Part shown: positions 46,771-56,171 of the stretch, piece after piece
Layout: each line of letters begins with the position of its first letter
Position numbering within the stretch: position 1 is the stretch's first letter
NCBI RefSeq assembly: GCF_000143415.4
Contig: NW_003314358.1
Span: forward strand, 605,109-669,108
Source of the DNA: Selaginella moellendorffii
Taxonomy: Eukaryota > Plantae > Lycopodiophyta
Length of the DNA stretch: 64,000 bases
Direction: 5' to 3'
Made by a program: the position numbers and the translations under genes
The notes under the pieces: generated by a model
Database searches by the model: none
Seen by the model: the letters and a program-made list of their open reading frames with translations, nothing else
What the model was told of the DNA's origin: nothing

Positions 46771-46884
46771 GAAGATATTTTATATTTCCATTTATCCTTC
46801 TTACTTAAAAAGAATTTATTATTTAAACATGAATAAATAATTACTATTGTATATACTATAAATAAAAAAAATCAAGGTGAAAAC

Positions 46885-46989
46885 ATATATACATACATAC
46901 ATACATACATATATATATGTATATATATATGTATATATATGTATATATATATATATATGTATATATATGTATATATATGTATATATATG

Positions 46990-47020
<31 letters not shown>

Positions 47021-47061
47021 GTATATATATGTATATATATGTATATATATGTATATATATG

Positions 47062-47094
<33 letters not shown>

Positions 47095-47187
47095 GTATAT
47101 ATATATATGTATATATGTGTATATATATGTATATATATATATGTATATATATATGTATATATGTGTATATATATATATATATATATA
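46885..47187. repeat. Compound (TA)n/(TACA)n/(TATATATATG)n microsatellite
   Basis: About 300 bp of TA repeats interrupted periodically by G. Confidence 0.97.
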
Positions 47188-47214
47188 AAATATATAATAT
47201 ATGGTTAATACTAT

Positions 47215-48927
47215 GTCGCCGAAATGGTAAATCATCAATAAATGATATAAGATTCTCAAACTTATTATGAAGCTTTTTAATTTATGACTCAACCTTTTAA
47301 GCCTTAAAAACCTTATCAATAAAAGGTAAATTCTGTTTTGTACCTTATCGACATTGAATGTCAAGTATAACAACCATTAACAGTATAAAATCCTCATCCA
47401 AAAAATCTTAAGATACTAGAACAAGAAATTCGTTAAAACATGAGAAAAGAGCAAAGAAAAAAGAGAAGCTTATTTACATTTTCAATATCACCTTAAAACT
47501 GTCTTTTTTATTGTCTAGGGACGGATCTTGATAATCATTTATGGAAAATGGGAGAATTATGGTACACATAAAGAAAGTGTGGAATAAATATTGAAAGCAC
47601 CACCAGAGATGGGTATATAGGACATTGTCGTATGATTGAGAAGTTGCACTGATCTTTTTATTGGCTAAAAATATGACATGATGTTATTTAATATGTGTAT
47701 AATTGCATTTAGTGCTAAATTTATAATACTCCCCCTTGTGATGCAAAAGGACAATTGAAATCAATTATAATTTCCCGTTCATTTGAGTTGGTGGCATTTT
47801 ATTTAATAGGACCTTTTCCATGATCAATTGCTGATAATGAGTATGTCATTATTGTTTTTGACTACTTGGCTTATTAGGTGAAAATTAGTGCTTTTGCTAA
47901 TGTGTCTGTACCTGCTGTTAAATATTTTTTCCTCAATCAAGTGGTGTTTCAACAATTCTGTCTAAAGTGGATTCTTTCGGATAATGATCCCACATTTATG
48001 GTTGAGGCATTTCATATTTTGACATCTCAATTAGGGATATACCACACTTGCATAAGTGCTTAATATTTATAATCAAACGGTTTAGTGAAATGGCTTGTTA
48101 AGACTTTCAAAAAACTGATCACGAAGTATATAAACTTTCAGCATTCAAATTGAAATGGTTTATATAATGAAACATCAATAGAACTCTACACCCCTATAAC
48201 ATATGCATACTGAAGTAATGGCAAATAACTTTTATATGGTCATGATTTAATACTACCAATGGAATTGAGTTTATCTTTGCAATTGTTGCAGGCTATTGAT
48301 GCTAAGTTGTGGAATCAATATTTGACAAACATTCTTCCATTTGTTCAAGTAGAGTTTGCCAAACATCTGGGCCATATATAAGTGGGACAGTAATAACGTT
48401 ACAACTCCCATCATCATCCACGTATGGAGTACAAAATAGATGACCTAATGTTAGTTCATTTTCCCCATCTTATAATATGTGGTTTATCTAAAAGGCTTCT
48501 TACTTAGTGGAAAGGTCCATATCAAGTGTTGTAACAAGTTAGACTGCAAATTTATGAGGTTCAGCATGACATCCAATAAGCTAATCTTCCAAAAATTATG
48601 CATACAATGGCTAAAATATTTTGTAAAAAGGGATTATAAACAATTAATACCATTTATAAATCCACTGATGCCTCCTCTTAATGTTCTTCAAGATCCCGGC
48701 CCATCCACAAAAGAACCCTAATAGTCTTCTATCATTCCGAGAGAAGGGGATGATGTGAGGTCAAAGTGTATAGCTATAATGCTGTATATTAATATTAGCA
48801 TAGTGGGATTTTGGTAACCATTAGATTAATTTCAATTTAGACCATTCGCTCATATATAAGTTAAGGTTTTTGGGCTAATTAATATGTATATTTGTTGTAT
48901 TTTCTTTCCATATTCCATACACTCACA
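47215..48927 (+). mobile_element. Decayed 3' portion of a gypsy copy (integrase remnant, PPT, 3' LTR)
   Basis: 47500-48100 aligns to 34770-35355; PPT GAGAGAAGGGGA precedes LTR TG...CA at 48754-48927; a short inverted internal fragment lies near 47215-47260. Confidence 0.85.
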
Positions 48928-49619: not shown

Positions 49620-50519
49620 CTAGTAGTCATCGTCGGATTTGTACCTCCCATACTTGTCCCTGTTAAGCATATTCTCCACGAACCCGGGAGGATAATCATC
49701 CTTGTTCCTCTCCGCCTCCTCCAGCGCCAGCTTCTTGGCAAACTTCATCACCGCGCGGCTGTCCACCACAATCCACGTCTCCTTTGGATCCAGCTCGCAC
49801 AAGTTCCTCTTGATGTCGCTGGGAGCCTCCGGGATCATCACTCCATACGCGCTACACTTGTCCAAAAACCTCTCGAAATCCTTCTGGCTGTCCAGCTTGA
49901 ATTGCATCGCTCGCCCCAGCGCGATGAACTTCATCACCTTTCCAATGTTGTCATAGTGTGGCGGCGGCTCCTTGGGCTTCTCCTCCACCGCAGCGGCGGC
50001 GTAGGGGGATTGATCGTAGCTTTGCTGCTGCTGCGATGGATCATACTGGGACTGATCGTATTGCTGGTACTGCTGGGATTGATCGTAGCCTTCGTAGTAC
50101 TGCTGCTCGTCGTACTCCTGGTCGTAGCTCCCTCCATCCATCTCGTACTGAGCTTGGCCTCCATCCATCTCGTATTGAGCTTGGCCTCCATCCATCTGGT
50201 ACTGAGCTTGATCTCCTTGCGGGATTTCTGGATTCGCTACTGGAGGAGGAGCCTCCTCTTCTACCACTGGAGAAAACTCGGCTTCGATTACCTCGCCGGT
50301 GCCATAGCTGCTGCTCCTGGGGCAATGCCGAGCGAGCAATGCTGCCCTCATTCCTCCCAAAGCTCCTCCTCCTCCCATTCTTAGCAGCAGCGGCCTGGAG
50401 CAAGAGAGATTCAACACACCTTTCACGGAATGCGGCATTGTAATCGCCGTGGAGCGCGTGGGAGTGGCAACAGCAGGATTTGTAGTAGCAGCAGGGCTCA
50501 CCGCCAGCGCCATCGCCAT
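49620..50519 (-). CDS. Uncharacterised protein with a transit-peptide-like N-terminus and Gln/Tyr/Asp-rich repeats
   Basis: Single ORF of about 299 aa; Ala/Thr/Ser-rich N-terminus; 3x QAQY(E/Q)MDGG; globular-looking C-terminus; telo-box upstream. Confidence 0.75.
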   Translation of the reverse strand: MAMALAVSPAATTNPAVATPTRSTAITMPHSVKGVLNLSCSRPLLLRMGGGGALGGMRAALLARHCPRSSSYGTGEVIEAEFSPVVEEEAPPPVANPEIPQGDQAQYQMDGGQAQYEMDGGQAQYEMDGGSYDQEYDEQQYYEGYDQSQQYQQYDQSQYDPSQQQQSYDQSPYAAAAVEEKPKEPPPHYDNIGKVMKFIALGRAMQFKLDSQKDFERFLDKCSAYGVMIPEAPSDIKRNLCELDPKETWIVVDSRAVMKFAKKLALEEAERNKDDYPPGFVENMLNRDKYGRYKSDDDY

Positions 50520-50960
50520 CGCCAATTCCAGATAAACCCTAAAACCCCAAAACAAAATATCTGGCTGCTCAAGAGATTCGAACTCGAAAGCTGTTAAACC
50601 TTTAGTTTAGAACTAATGATTGCTCATTTAGGTGTTTGTTAAAACCAACCTGGTGCCGCCAACTTTGTTTTAGTCTAACATTTGATATGTGAGTCTGTGA
50701 TTCATTAAACACATTCGCTGTTACGCCTGCGTTCTTATCTTGATCTCGTTGGTTGCCGCCTCCAAAAACCGAGACGGTGGTGGAAATAGGTTGACCGTAT
50801 CGTATTCGTCCACTCCCAGTACAAAAACATGCCATTGGAGCAGGATCGACTGTAGAGCTTCTTCTCCGTCTCTTTTTCTTTTCGAGAGTACTCTAGCTAG
50901 AGCGAAGTGTATATGTAGTCAGTATAGATAGCGTATTTCCAGCAATCCATCGCTCGATCT

Positions 50961-51579
50961 ATGATGTCTCGCTTCATCGTCTTTGGTTTGGTGCTAGTGT
51001 TTGCAGCCACCGCTATGGCTACTCGACCTCTCAAGGGCTCCACAGGCAAGTCTTAAGGCCATTTGTTTATGATTCTTTTTTATGGCGTTTCTATCTCGTT
51101 TTCCCTCTTTTTTTTTCGATCCATCATGGTTGCTTCGTTTCGTTTCATACTTTTTTGTTGTTGGCTCTCGATATTTGGCTAAATAATGTCGAGAAGTCTT
51201 TTGTTTTGAGTTCACTCTTGAAACTCCCGATTTTCTTTGCCTCTGGCTAAGTCCTCGTCTTGTTTCAGCAGTGACAAGTACCAAGAGTGAAGCCAATGGC
51301 ATGACGAGTGCTGGATCCGTTGCTGAATCCGACGCTGCTGGCAATGATGCAGAAACTGCTGTAAGATTTATCCCGTTAAGTCTTGTGATCACGATTTTTA
51401 AACGCTCTTTTATACTACAGGAGGCGTATGATCGAAAGGAAGAATCGCAGTGTGATGATGAGCAGCAAGAGCAGCCTAATGTCGACTACATTTACGATGG
51501 ATATGATCGGAGGAAGTCACAGCACTGCCACCGCCGCCACCCGTCAGGACCAGATCTCTTCGAAGCGGCAGCCCCGTGA
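50961..51579 (+). CDS. Secreted phytosulfokine-like precursor B (about 111 aa, 3 exons, NVDYIYDGY...RRHPSGPD)
   Basis: Exons 50961-51045, 51269-51360 and 51421-51579 are in frame; GC-AG first intron with a NAGNAG acceptor; signal peptide MMSRFIVFGLVLVFAATAMATRP; paralogue of 11352-11806. Confidence 0.8.
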
Positions 51580-51875
51580 AAAAGCTTCCTAACACATCTC
51601 CATGTTTATAGTGTTGTAACTTTCTTGTAAAGAATTGTAAAGTCTCTTTGAAAAGATCTTTCCTTTTGTATCTTTCTGATCTGATTGTTTGGAAAAACTT
51701 TATATTTGGCTACTCGAAGAAAGCTCGCCACTCTCTGATCTCCCGGATCTATGTGTGCATGCATAAAGGATTTAAGCCGTCATTGGTGACTGCGTTTAAA
51801 GCCCAAAGATCTGAGGATTTAATTGGAAATCTCTCAAGATTCCGATATTCTGTCACTAATGTATAACAACCTGTT

Positions 51876-52290
51876 ATGAAGTCCATAAAACTCTGCTCGA
51901 GAGTATTCGTTCTTGTATCACTCAAACTGATCCAATCCTCTCTACCAATTTTCTTCCAGAGAGATTTTTTCCTCTATAACCAGCTCATCCAGAGCTTTGG
52001 GAGACTCGGCTGCTCCAAAGATGCCCGATCCGCTATTCTTACAATACAGTGTTGGCATTAGAAAAGTCTAAATCTTTGTTTTGTGGAACTCTGTGATTGC
52101 GGCATATACCAATCTTGGTAGCGCAAAGTCTACCTTTGACAACACTCCCTGGTGAAATCTAGTCACGTGTCCTGATCTCAGGTGGGCAAGTCGACGTGGC
52201 AAAATTAATCACTTATATGTATGAATGTATATATGTGAGATATATGAGATGCCAGTGAGAGACAATCCATGGTGTGTGGATATACAAAAT
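51876..52290 (+). pseudogene. Deleted partial copy of the PPR gene at 53883
   Basis: SLKLIQSSLPIFFQRD...QLIQSFGRLGCSKDARS and later patches match 53930-54840 with large deletions. Confidence 0.85.
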
Positions 52291-53882: not shown

Positions 53883-56171
53883 ATGGATCGCCATTTCCTG
53901 CTAGAGAGCATCCGTTCTTGTAAGAGCTCGGCATCACTCAAAGTGATCCAATCATCTCTACCAATCTACTTCCAGAGGGATTCGTCCCTCTCGAACCAGC
54001 TCATCCAGAGCTTCGGGAGACTTGGGTGCTGCAAAGATGCCCGATCCGTGTTTGACGCCATGGAGTGGCGGGATTGTTTTTCATGGGACTTCATGCTCGC
54101 CGCCTACATTCGCAGTGGGGATTTGGAGGAATCAAAGCGATTCTTTTACTCCATGCCCGATCCAAGCCTCGTGTCGTGGACAGCGATCATCACCGCAACT
54201 GCCCAAAGAGAAAACTTGCGACGCGCGAGGCATTTCTTCGATGCTATGCCGAAACGAGACGTGATCTCCTGCACGGCGATGATCAAGGCGTGTTCCAACG
54301 GCGGAGACCTCGATCAAGCGCTGGAAGTTTTCAATTCTATACTTTACAAAGATCTGGTAGCGTCAAACGCAATGCTAGGCGCGGTTGCCCGTTTGGGGCA
54401 TTTTGAAGAGACTGTCTCATTCTTTCAGTCTTTGCCTTTACACGACCTCTATTCTTACAACACAGTGTTGGCAAAGGCTGATAACGTAAACGAGTCCAAA
54501 TATTTGTTTGACAAACAACCCGAAAAAGATCTTGTGACGTGGAACTCCATGATTGCGGCATATACCAAAGCCGGGGATCTTGGTAGCGCAAAGTCAACGT
54601 TTGACAATGCTCCCTTGTGGAATCTAGTCACTTGGAATTCCATGTTGGTAGGGTATATGCAAGATTGCCAAGTGGATGTGGCAAAGATAATCACTTATGA
54701 GATGCCAGAGTGGGATCTTTTCACTTGGAACGCCACACTAGCGGGATACTTCCAAAATGGGAATCTTTCTAATGCGGCAATGTTGTTCCACCAAATGCCC
54801 AAGAAAGACATTGTGACATGGAACTCCATGGTGTGTGGATATTCCCAGAGCGGGCATTTGCAAGATGCCGAGAAGATACTCCTTGCCATGCCTGAGCATG
54901 CAGTGGTGACGTGGTCGGCAATGCTGGATGCGTACGCACGAAATGGCCACGTGGACCGTGCCAAGCAGATATTTGAGAGATTTCGTACGACTCCGTACAG
55001 CCTAGCATTTGAGAATGGTATGCTAGTAGCGTATGCCCAAACTGGGAATTACATAGAAGCAAAGATTCTTTTTGATAGCATGGTACAGAAAAGCATGGTA
55101 ACCTGGAATGCCATGCTAGATGCGTGTTCCTTGGAAGAAAAGTATGATCACGTAGAAAAAATGTGGGATTCTATGCCGTATTGCGATCTAATATCATGGA
55201 ATATACGTCTGTCTACGTATGCCCAGCAAGGGGATCTGGAGAAGTCAAAGAGGTCTTTTGATTCCATGCCTGTCAAGGACATTGTCTCTTACACTTCAAT
55301 GATCACAGCTTACACCCGAAACCTAGAGCTTGAGAAAGCATGGACGCTCTTTGAATCCCTTCCCTACCACAATCTAGTTTGCTGGAATGCCATTCTTTCA
55401 GCCCATGTACACGGACGAGACATTGTGCGGCTCCAATTGTTGTTTGATCAAGCTCCTCAAAAAGATTTAGTTTCATGGAATCAACTTCTGGCAGCATATT
55501 CCAGATTGGGGGCTCTAGAACACGCAAATGCCATCTTTGAAAAAATGCCGGAGCATGACACTCTGTCTTGGACTGTTTTAAGTACAGCGTTTGGTGTGAG
55601 CGGGTACCTAGAGTACTCCAAACTCTTGTTTTATTTCATGCCAGAACGTAGCATAGTAGCGTACAATTCGATGCTATCGTCGTATTCTAGATTGGGCCAC
55701 GTTGAATTTGCGAAAGCCCTGTTTCTTGCAATGCCAGAATGGAACCTGGTTTCTTGGAGCGCTCTACTCGCGGCATATACCCAAACTGGGCATCATGCGG
55801 ATGCGTCGAGATTATTCTTGGAGCTCTCGCTGTTCGAGATTCCAGACTCTATGTGTTTTGTACTAGCCCTGGTGTCAGCGAGCCGCGTTGGTACCGTCAT
55901 GAATGGACGATGGAGATTCGTTTCGATGTGTGCCGACTTTGGAGTGACTCCGACCAAGCAGCACTACTGCTGCATTGTGGACGCCTTGAGCCGGGCGGGA
56001 TACTTGAAAGATGCCGAAGATGTTCTCAAGGAGATGCCGTTTGAGGCCGAGAATCTGGACTGGAAGTGCTTGCTTTGGAGTCGCAGAAATCACAAGTACA
56101 AGCCAATGACCCCTGTTATAAGCCTAGACTCCATGGATGGGGCTGCATACATGCTAGCCTCAAGGTTGTAA
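53883..56171 (+). CDS. PLS-class PPR protein (SS-repeat array, shortened E domain)
   Basis: 762-aa intronless ORF of repeats of about 31 aa; HYCCIVDALSRAG; short E domain ending AAYMLASRL. Confidence 0.92.
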   Translation: MDRHFLLESIRSCKSSASLKVIQSSLPIYFQRDSSLSNQLIQSFGRLGCCKDARSVFDAMEWRDCFSWDFMLAAYIRSGDLEESKRFFYSMPDPSLVSWTAIITATAQRENLRRARHFFDAMPKRDVISCTAMIKACSNGGDLDQALEVFNSILYKDLVASNAMLGAVARLGHFEETVSFFQSLPLHDLYSYNTVLAKADNVNESKYLFDKQPEKDLVTWNSMIAAYTKAGDLGSAKSTFDNAPLWNLVTWNSMLVGYMQDCQVDVAKIITYEMPEWDLFTWNATLAGYFQNGNLSNAAMLFHQMPKKDIVTWNSMVCGYSQSGHLQDAEKILLAMPEHAVVTWSAMLDAYARNGHVDRAKQIFERFRTTPYSLAFENGMLVAYAQTGNYIEAKILFDSMVQKSMVTWNAMLDACSLEEKYDHVEKMWDSMPYCDLISWNIRLSTYAQQGDLEKSKRSFDSMPVKDIVSYTSMITAYTRNLELEKAWTLFESLPYHNLVCWNAILSAHVHGRDIVRLQLLFDQAPQKDLVSWNQLLAAYSRLGALEHANAIFEKMPEHDTLSWTVLSTAFGVSGYLEYSKLLFYFMPERSIVAYNSMLSSYSRLGHVEFAKALFLAMPEWNLVSWSALLAAYTQTGHHADASRLFLELSLFEIPDSMCFVLALVSASRVGTVMNGRWRFVSMCADFGVTPTKQHYCCIVDALSRAGYLKDAEDVLKEMPFEAENLDWKCLLWSRRNHKYKPMTPVISLDSMDGAAYMLASRL

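Follow-up and report, generated by a model that had tools for sequence, protein, structure and literature searches.

We have found that the locus at positions 50961-51579 (plus strand) of a 64,000-nucleotide stretch of Selaginella moellendorffii DNA (hereafter the window) is most likely an intact, unannotated paralogue in a family of phytosulfokine (PSK)-like secreted peptides that carry the motif DYIYD. This gene, which we refer to as copy B, has three exons (333 nt in total, 110 codons and a stop), would encode a prepropeptide of 110 residues, is a paralogue of a second gene in the window (copy A), and is retained in both haplotypes. Beyond DYIYD, copy B carries a C-terminal tail that is specific to this copy and that resembles in part a CLE peptide. 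Our preferred reading, to which we assign a probability of roughly 0.55, is that copy B is an intact member of the DYIYD family with a read-through tail that is either removed or inert, and that this tail resembles the front half of a CLE peptide by coincidence.

A six-frame motif scan of the window returned one DYIYD besides that of copy B, and this second motif belongs to copy A (Table 1). The two copies have in common a layout of three exons, intron phases 1 and 0, and a first intron of the GC-AG type entered through CACAG/GCAAG (the slash marks the exon-intron boundary), just as the original prediction had it, and the coordinates were re-checked by script. The donor of this intron reads GCAAGC in copy A and GCAAGT in copy B. 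A GT that follows the GC donor of copy B at a distance of 4 nt was considered as an alternative donor and rejected, since its use shifts the frame into a premature stop, and copy A has no GT near its GC donor; in both copies, therefore, only the GC donor preserves the reading frame as far as DYIYD. The gene model and the shared GC-AG intron, as first described, are borne out. The acceptor of intron 1 in copy B is a cagcag NAGNAG site (51266-51271), in which 51269 provides an in-frame alternative. At the nucleotide level, exon 1 of copy B is about 72% identical to exon 1 of copy A.

The product of copy B would comprise, in order, a signal peptide, a variable region, and then ...NVDYIYDGYDRRKSQHCHRRHPSGPDLFEAAAP up to the stop. 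Judged by its hydropathy and by an AxA cleavage motif, the N-terminus is a putative signal peptide; its core is strongly hydrophobic, with a peak of 3.3 over 9 residues, and AMA occupies positions -3 to -1. The DYIYD motif is unchanged in copy A, where it reads VDYIYD, and in the other haplotype of copy B. Copy A contains no Cys and no tail, its DYIYD being followed by 3 residues.

Table 1. Positions of the features discussed, given in window coordinates except for the allele of copy B
Feature	Position	Strand	Remarks
Copy B, exon 1	50961-51045	+	starts ATGATG, ends CTCCACAG/GCAAGT; CACAG before the GC donor; phase 1
Copy B, exon 1 product		+	putative signal peptide MMSRFIVFGLVLVFAATAMA/TRPLKGST, predicted from sequence
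Copy B, intron 1	51046-51271	+	GC-AG type, GCAAGT...cagcag; GC donor 51046-47
Copy B, exon 2	51272-51360	+	variable Ser/Ala/Thr-rich propeptide region; ends in phase 0
Copy B, intron 2	51361-51420	+	GT-AG type, GTAAGA...ctacag
Copy B, exon 3	51421-51579	+	EAYDRKEESQCDDEQQEQPNVDYIYDGYDRRKSQHCHRRHPSGPDLFEAAAP, then stop; TGA at 51577-51579
Copy B, DYIYD motif	51484-51498	+	phytosulfokine-like; DY gives a tyrosine-sulfation context
Copy B, C-terminal tail	51499-51576	+	26 codons, GYDRRKSQHCHRRHPSGPDLFEAAAP; missing from copy A
Copy B, RRK basic site	51508-51516	+	candidate cleavage site
Copy B, CLE-like 12-mer	51532-51567	+	RRHPSGPDLFEA; front half CLE-like, back half not
Copy B, conserved 3'UTR block	51598-51632	+	UGUA-rich; counterpart in copy A at 11265-11226 (-)
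Copy A	11806-11728, 11556-11492, 11432-11352	-	three exons; ends ...DHVDYIYDFNP, then stop
Copy B, allele	9875-9264 within the allelic segment of GL377567.1	-	
SELMODRAFT_447687 gene	49620-50555	-	transit-peptide-like start, three GGQAQY[EQ]MD repeats, Gln/Tyr/Asp-rich middle

Copy B is not called as a gene in GenBank on either haplotype (GL377662.1 and GL377567.1). Pfam searches at E<=10 with each exon of copy B, with exon 3 of copy A and with the neighbouring gene returned nothing relevant and no PSK match. The query for the library searches was the stop-free open reading frame 51271-51576, which takes in exon 2, intron 2 and exon 3, so that the exons were presented unspliced. This query gave no candidate in a word-indexed search of 5.8 billion proteins and 0 matches at E<=0.001 in a full HMMER search of 1.84 billion representatives, and a profile made from it together with exon 3 of copy A gave three word-sharing candidates, none of them at E<=10. 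Because the profile search recovered no protein for copy A either, the absence of copy B from these libraries says little about its expression. The look-alikes of exon 3 in the ESM Atlas were just unnamed bacterial clusters with low recognition and are uninformative, and in the literature searched we found no plant report of DYIYD, DYIYDF, YIYDF or YIYDV.

We present evidence that the tail of copy B occupies DNA that serves as 3'UTR in copy A. Downstream of both genes lies a conserved block with the pattern CTCCATGT..GTGT..TGTAAC..TTGT.AAAG, whose local alignment score between the copies is 29, compared with 16.4 +/- 2.3 for shuffled sequences (p about 0.001). The block lies 19 nt past the stop of copy B and 87 nt past that of copy A, and the distance from the last codon of DYIYD to the block is about 99 nt in copy B and about 98 nt in copy A. 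With the spacing between DYIYD and the block thus unchanged, the tail of B and the 3'UTR of A are positionally equivalent, and no CLE module has been inserted. Since PSK-type precursors bear their peptide near the C-terminus (PMC10796568), the tail is presumably derived and the short end ancestral. Local alignment of the tail of B with the 3'UTR of A is not significant (p=0.94), and for this reason we dropped the notion, suggested by a MAFFT alignment, that a 14-nt deletion removed the stop. In its other two frames the UTR of copy A runs for 40 and 30 codons without a stop, so that long tails rich in Pro, Ser, Gly and Arg would follow from almost any change of frame here; one of these frames reads ...PPKPSGGG..., with Ser codons unrelated to those of copy B. 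We note that the conserved block may have a regulatory role, for instance as a poly(A) upstream element.

The second haplotype carries an allele of copy B on GL377567.1, in an allelic region around 1.585-1.606 Mb. The allele retains both ATGs, the GC donor, the cagcag acceptor, the GT-AG boundaries of intron 2 and the whole frame, and its tail has the same amino-acid sequence, which shows that the C-terminal extension is older than the divergence of the haplotypes. Five coding differences are nonsynonymous: the signal peptide has V>L, exon 2 has T>P, T>A and A>V, and exon 3 has R>Q near its start. Exon 2 also has an in-frame insertion of 3 nt, and of two synonymous changes one (GCC>GCG) falls in the tail; outside exon 3, these counts give no indication of purifying selection. 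Over the 43 codons that run from the Cys to the stop the haplotypes differ only once, and synonymously, whereas intron 2, the most diverged part of copy B, has 5 differences in 60 nt. Exon 3 overall is marginally less diverged than non-coding DNA, with 2 mismatches in 159 positions against 34 in 820 for the pooled 5' flank, introns and first 150 nt of the 3' flank (Fisher p=0.05). The tail taken alone has 1 mismatch in 81 positions against 4.1% for non-coding DNA, a comparison that is underpowered and gives no significant constraint (p=0.16).

These comparisons bear on the possibility that copy B is a decaying paralogue, one that lost its normal C-terminus, reads into the UTR and yields no working hormone, with a frame that is still intact since the change is recent. 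Consistent with decay, Gly follows YIYD in copy B where copy A has Phe, the xP-stop ending of copy A has been lost, the gene is unannotated with no protein on record, and the allelic changes number five nonsynonymous to two synonymous, with the indel described above in addition; moreover, given the open frames in the UTR of copy A, an open tail of 26 codons needs no selection. Against this, the signal peptide, both introns (the rare GC donor included), the reading frame and DYIYD are all intact on both haplotypes, and this integrity has persisted despite a neutral divergence of about 4% between the haplotypes and a deep divergence from copy A. The near-identity of the alleles from the Cys onward and the reduced divergence of exon 3 likewise argue against decay, and we consider it possible but rather unlikely that copy B is on its way to being lost.

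The original prediction offered two accounts of the tail: a two-peptide precursor, PSK-like plus CLE-like, or a coincidental extension. In the first of these, cuts around RRK and before RRH would release a PSK-like sulfopeptide and a CLE-like ligand of a CLE/IDA-type LRR receptor. Several features speak for such a dual-hormone precursor. RRHPSGPD indeed fits the common CLE front half RRVPSGPD at seven of eight positions, and within the 12-mer R-R-H-P-S-G-P-D-L-F-E-A the residues R1, P4, S5, G6, P7 and D8 fit CLE. The basic site RRK is present between DYIYD and the CLE-like motif, as had been claimed, and 3 residues separate the 12-mer from the stop of a 110-residue precursor with a putative signal peptide, a position in the fashion of CLE peptides.

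The back half of the 12-mer tells against a CLE function, however. Six residues are almost invariant among CLE peptides (R, P, G, P, P and H, at R1, P4, G6, P7, P9 and H11; Oelkers et al. 2008, PMC2254619), and two of these six are lacking here, where Leu9 stands for Pro and Glu11 for His. The last residue of every mature CLE peptide is Asn or His, and conserved receptor residues hold Asn12 with its free C-terminus (Zhang et al. 2016, PMC4856767); an N12A substitution or the loss of one C-terminal residue lowers binding or activity (PMC4856767). In copy B position 12 is Ala, followed by AAP and the stop, so that the obligatory terminal Asn or His is absent; the earlier observation that the PxHH/N end is missing was correct. 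Even the sole mismatch in the front half, His for Val at position 3, is at a critical site, since Val3 of TDIF packs against two receptor glycines and a V3H substitution 'greatly compromised' TDIF-PXY binding (PMC4856767). Neither PxHN nor PxH[NH] is found downstream in any frame of copy B, and because the other two downstream frames are without PxHN, no recent frameshift hides a complete CLE motif. The tail therefore matches CLE peptides in its front half and in its place within the precursor, and fails all testable back-half features and one critical front-half feature. Together with the equivalence of the tail to UTR, as opposed to an inserted module, and the lack of Pfam or library relatives, these findings lead us to regard a true dual-hormone precursor as very improbable.

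A partial match of this quality raises the question of chance. From the six-frame composition of the window, the pattern R..PSGP[DN] has a probability of 5e-8 per position, so that 0.006 occurrences are expected per window and about 22 in a six-frame translation of the 212-Mb assembly. In a single tail of 16 positions the chance is about 1e-6 for this strict pattern and rises to about 1e-5 for a looser one; the low figure for one locus is a point in favour of a dual hormone. The half-motif is thus unlikely to arise by chance at one given locus, but it is not implausible genome-wide. Indeed, because partial matches to any of about ten peptide-hormone motifs would be flagged in the tail of any secreted peptide, over thousands of windows, one such coincidence genome-wide is unsurprising. 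The local sequence also favours a chance resemblance, the tail being GC-rich (63%, compared with 44% for the window). Most likely, then, the CLE resemblance is a coincidence and the tail would not act on CLE receptors, and of the two accounts first offered the coincidental extension is the one favoured by the failures at CLE residues and by the position of the tail.

One variant of the two-peptide account accommodates the UTR origin of the tail. A stop-loss into the 3'UTR could have made, alongside a sulfated PSK-like peptide, a second secreted peptide (RRHPSGPD...), processed at basic sites, that serves as a new, truncated or antagonistic ligand of the CLE/IDA type. If true, such a natural hybrid precursor would show UTR sequence caught in the act of giving rise to a new peptide signal, but we regard it as a long shot.

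It is also conceivable that the tail is functional in a way unrelated to CLE peptides, for example by closing a disulfide loop (C-x24-C) around DYIYDGYD, by forming part of a longer multi-sulfated peptide, or by regulating processing. Exon 3 contains exactly two Cys, which flank the motif and are both kept in the other haplotype, DYIYDGYD is an acidic Tyr cluster with three tyrosines next to Asp, and the tail is identical across haplotypes; the CIF, PSY and TWS1 peptides, of 18-27 residues, could serve as a model for a longer multi-sulfated peptide from copy B. In contrast, copy A manages without either Cys or tail, constraint on the tail is not demonstrable by the allelic comparison above, and by inspection copy B has neither the spacing of the RGF, CIF or PSY peptides (those of Table 1 in PMC8462819) nor the C-terminal Asn used by the GSO/RGI class of receptors. 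A functional tail of this kind seems to us doubtful. Readings of DY...HPSGPD as an RGF, CIF or PSY peptide were also considered and rejected, the spacing being a misfit and the terminal Asn being absent.

If copy B is an intact family member with a read-through tail, as we favour, its product would lose the signal peptide by cleavage after AMA, the tyrosines of DYIYD would be sulfated by TPST in the Golgi, and subtilases would free a short sulfopeptide containing YIYD. The frame of copy B would at some point have been extended into sequence that serves copy A as 3'UTR, presumably in that direction, giving the tail of 26 residues. This tail would probably be cut off as a propeptide, with RRK or its vicinity as a possible cleavage site, or else be inert.

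The surroundings of copy B include several other features. The neighbouring open reading frame 49623-50519 (minus strand) matches SELMODRAFT_447687 at 100% identity and SELMODRAFT_438182 at 92%. The loci of these two genes place the window on scaffold GL377662.1 of the S. moellendorffii assembly GCA_000143415.2, of which it forms the final 64 kb, record coordinates being window coordinates plus 605108. For SELMODRAFT_447687 we found no Pfam domain, and the only relatives that a homology search gave were the two alleles of S. moellendorffii, which are 92% identical. When two open reading frames next to copy B were looked up by exact sequence, nothing was on record. Just downstream of copy B, the open reading frame 51876-52058 (plus strand) is a duplicated N-terminal fragment of a 762-aa PPR gene (53883-56171, plus strand), the similarity running SLK.IQSSLPI.FQRD...NQLIQSFGRLGC.KDARS, and the collinearity of the two haplotypes stops near 52012. 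We also note a long imperfect (TA/TG)-rich simple repeat at 46819-47373, which gives rise to spurious YIYIYI open reading frames on both strands and is unrelated to the DYIYD genes.

Copy B can be compared with several known systems, the first of which is PSK of seed plants (YIYTQ; Pfam PF06404). PSK precursors are 80-120 residues long, begin with a signal peptide, have a conserved Asp in front of YIYTQ and carry the peptide near the C-terminus, and the known variants of the YIYTQ pentapeptide are YVYTQ, YIYTN and YVYTN (PMC10796568). Copy B is alike in its length of 110 residues, its putative signal peptide, the Asp before Tyr and the Y-I-Y core, and copy A in addition has its motif 3 residues from the C-terminus. 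The differences are that positions 4-5 are D-G in copy B and D-F in copy A, not T-Q, that the motif of copy B is followed by 26 residues, that the Pfam search brought no PSK match, and that the host is a lycophyte. A review reports no PSK in basal plants and describes it as confined to seed plants (PMC10796568), while the PSK candidates named by Furumizu et al. 2021 come from moss, liverwort and spruce, with none for Selaginella. We call copy B PSK-like and do not file it as a member of the PSK family; its sulfation, processing and receptor action are putative. The occurrence of a Y-I-Y-D core in a lycophyte family would bear on when sulfated PSK-type signals arose, although copy B itself adds little to the significance of the DYIYD family, its CLE-like tail failing at the residues that CLE receptors read.

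Compared with CLE peptides of the CLV3/TDIF type (12-13-mers), copy B shares the front-half residues and the location near the C-terminus of a secreted precursor. It differs in having His3 for Val or Ser, Leu9 for Pro, Glu11 for His or Ser and Ala12 for Asn or His, in the three residues that follow its 12-mer, and in that the rest of its precursor is unrelated to CLE. Multi-CLE proteins (PMC2254619) embody the same idea of a single secreted precursor with two or more signalling motifs, but the motifs of such multi-peptide precursors are complete and end in HN or HH, whereas the second motif of copy B is half-complete and is seen only in copy B and, unchanged, in its allele, being missing from copy A. 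Copy B is of modest value as an example of how a peptide precursor can gain a C-terminal tail from UTR sequence, and it warns against taking a half-motif such as PSGPD as evidence for a second hormone.

Lastly, the DYIYD core has a parallel in the PSK-like theta class of nematodes (DYIYDN), as described in a 2026 preprint (PMC13081851), which calls the T->D substitution absent from plant PSKs and whose authors see a need for receptor-binding assays that use sulfated synthetic peptides. The theta class and the Selaginella genes are alike in carrying T->D after Y-I-Y within a C-terminal motif of a secreted precursor, and unlike in that the nematode protein is an animal effector with Asn as its sixth residue, compared with Gly in copy B and Phe in copy A. 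If proven to be PSK relatives, the Selaginella DYIYD genes would provide a plant counter-example to the stated absence of this substitution.
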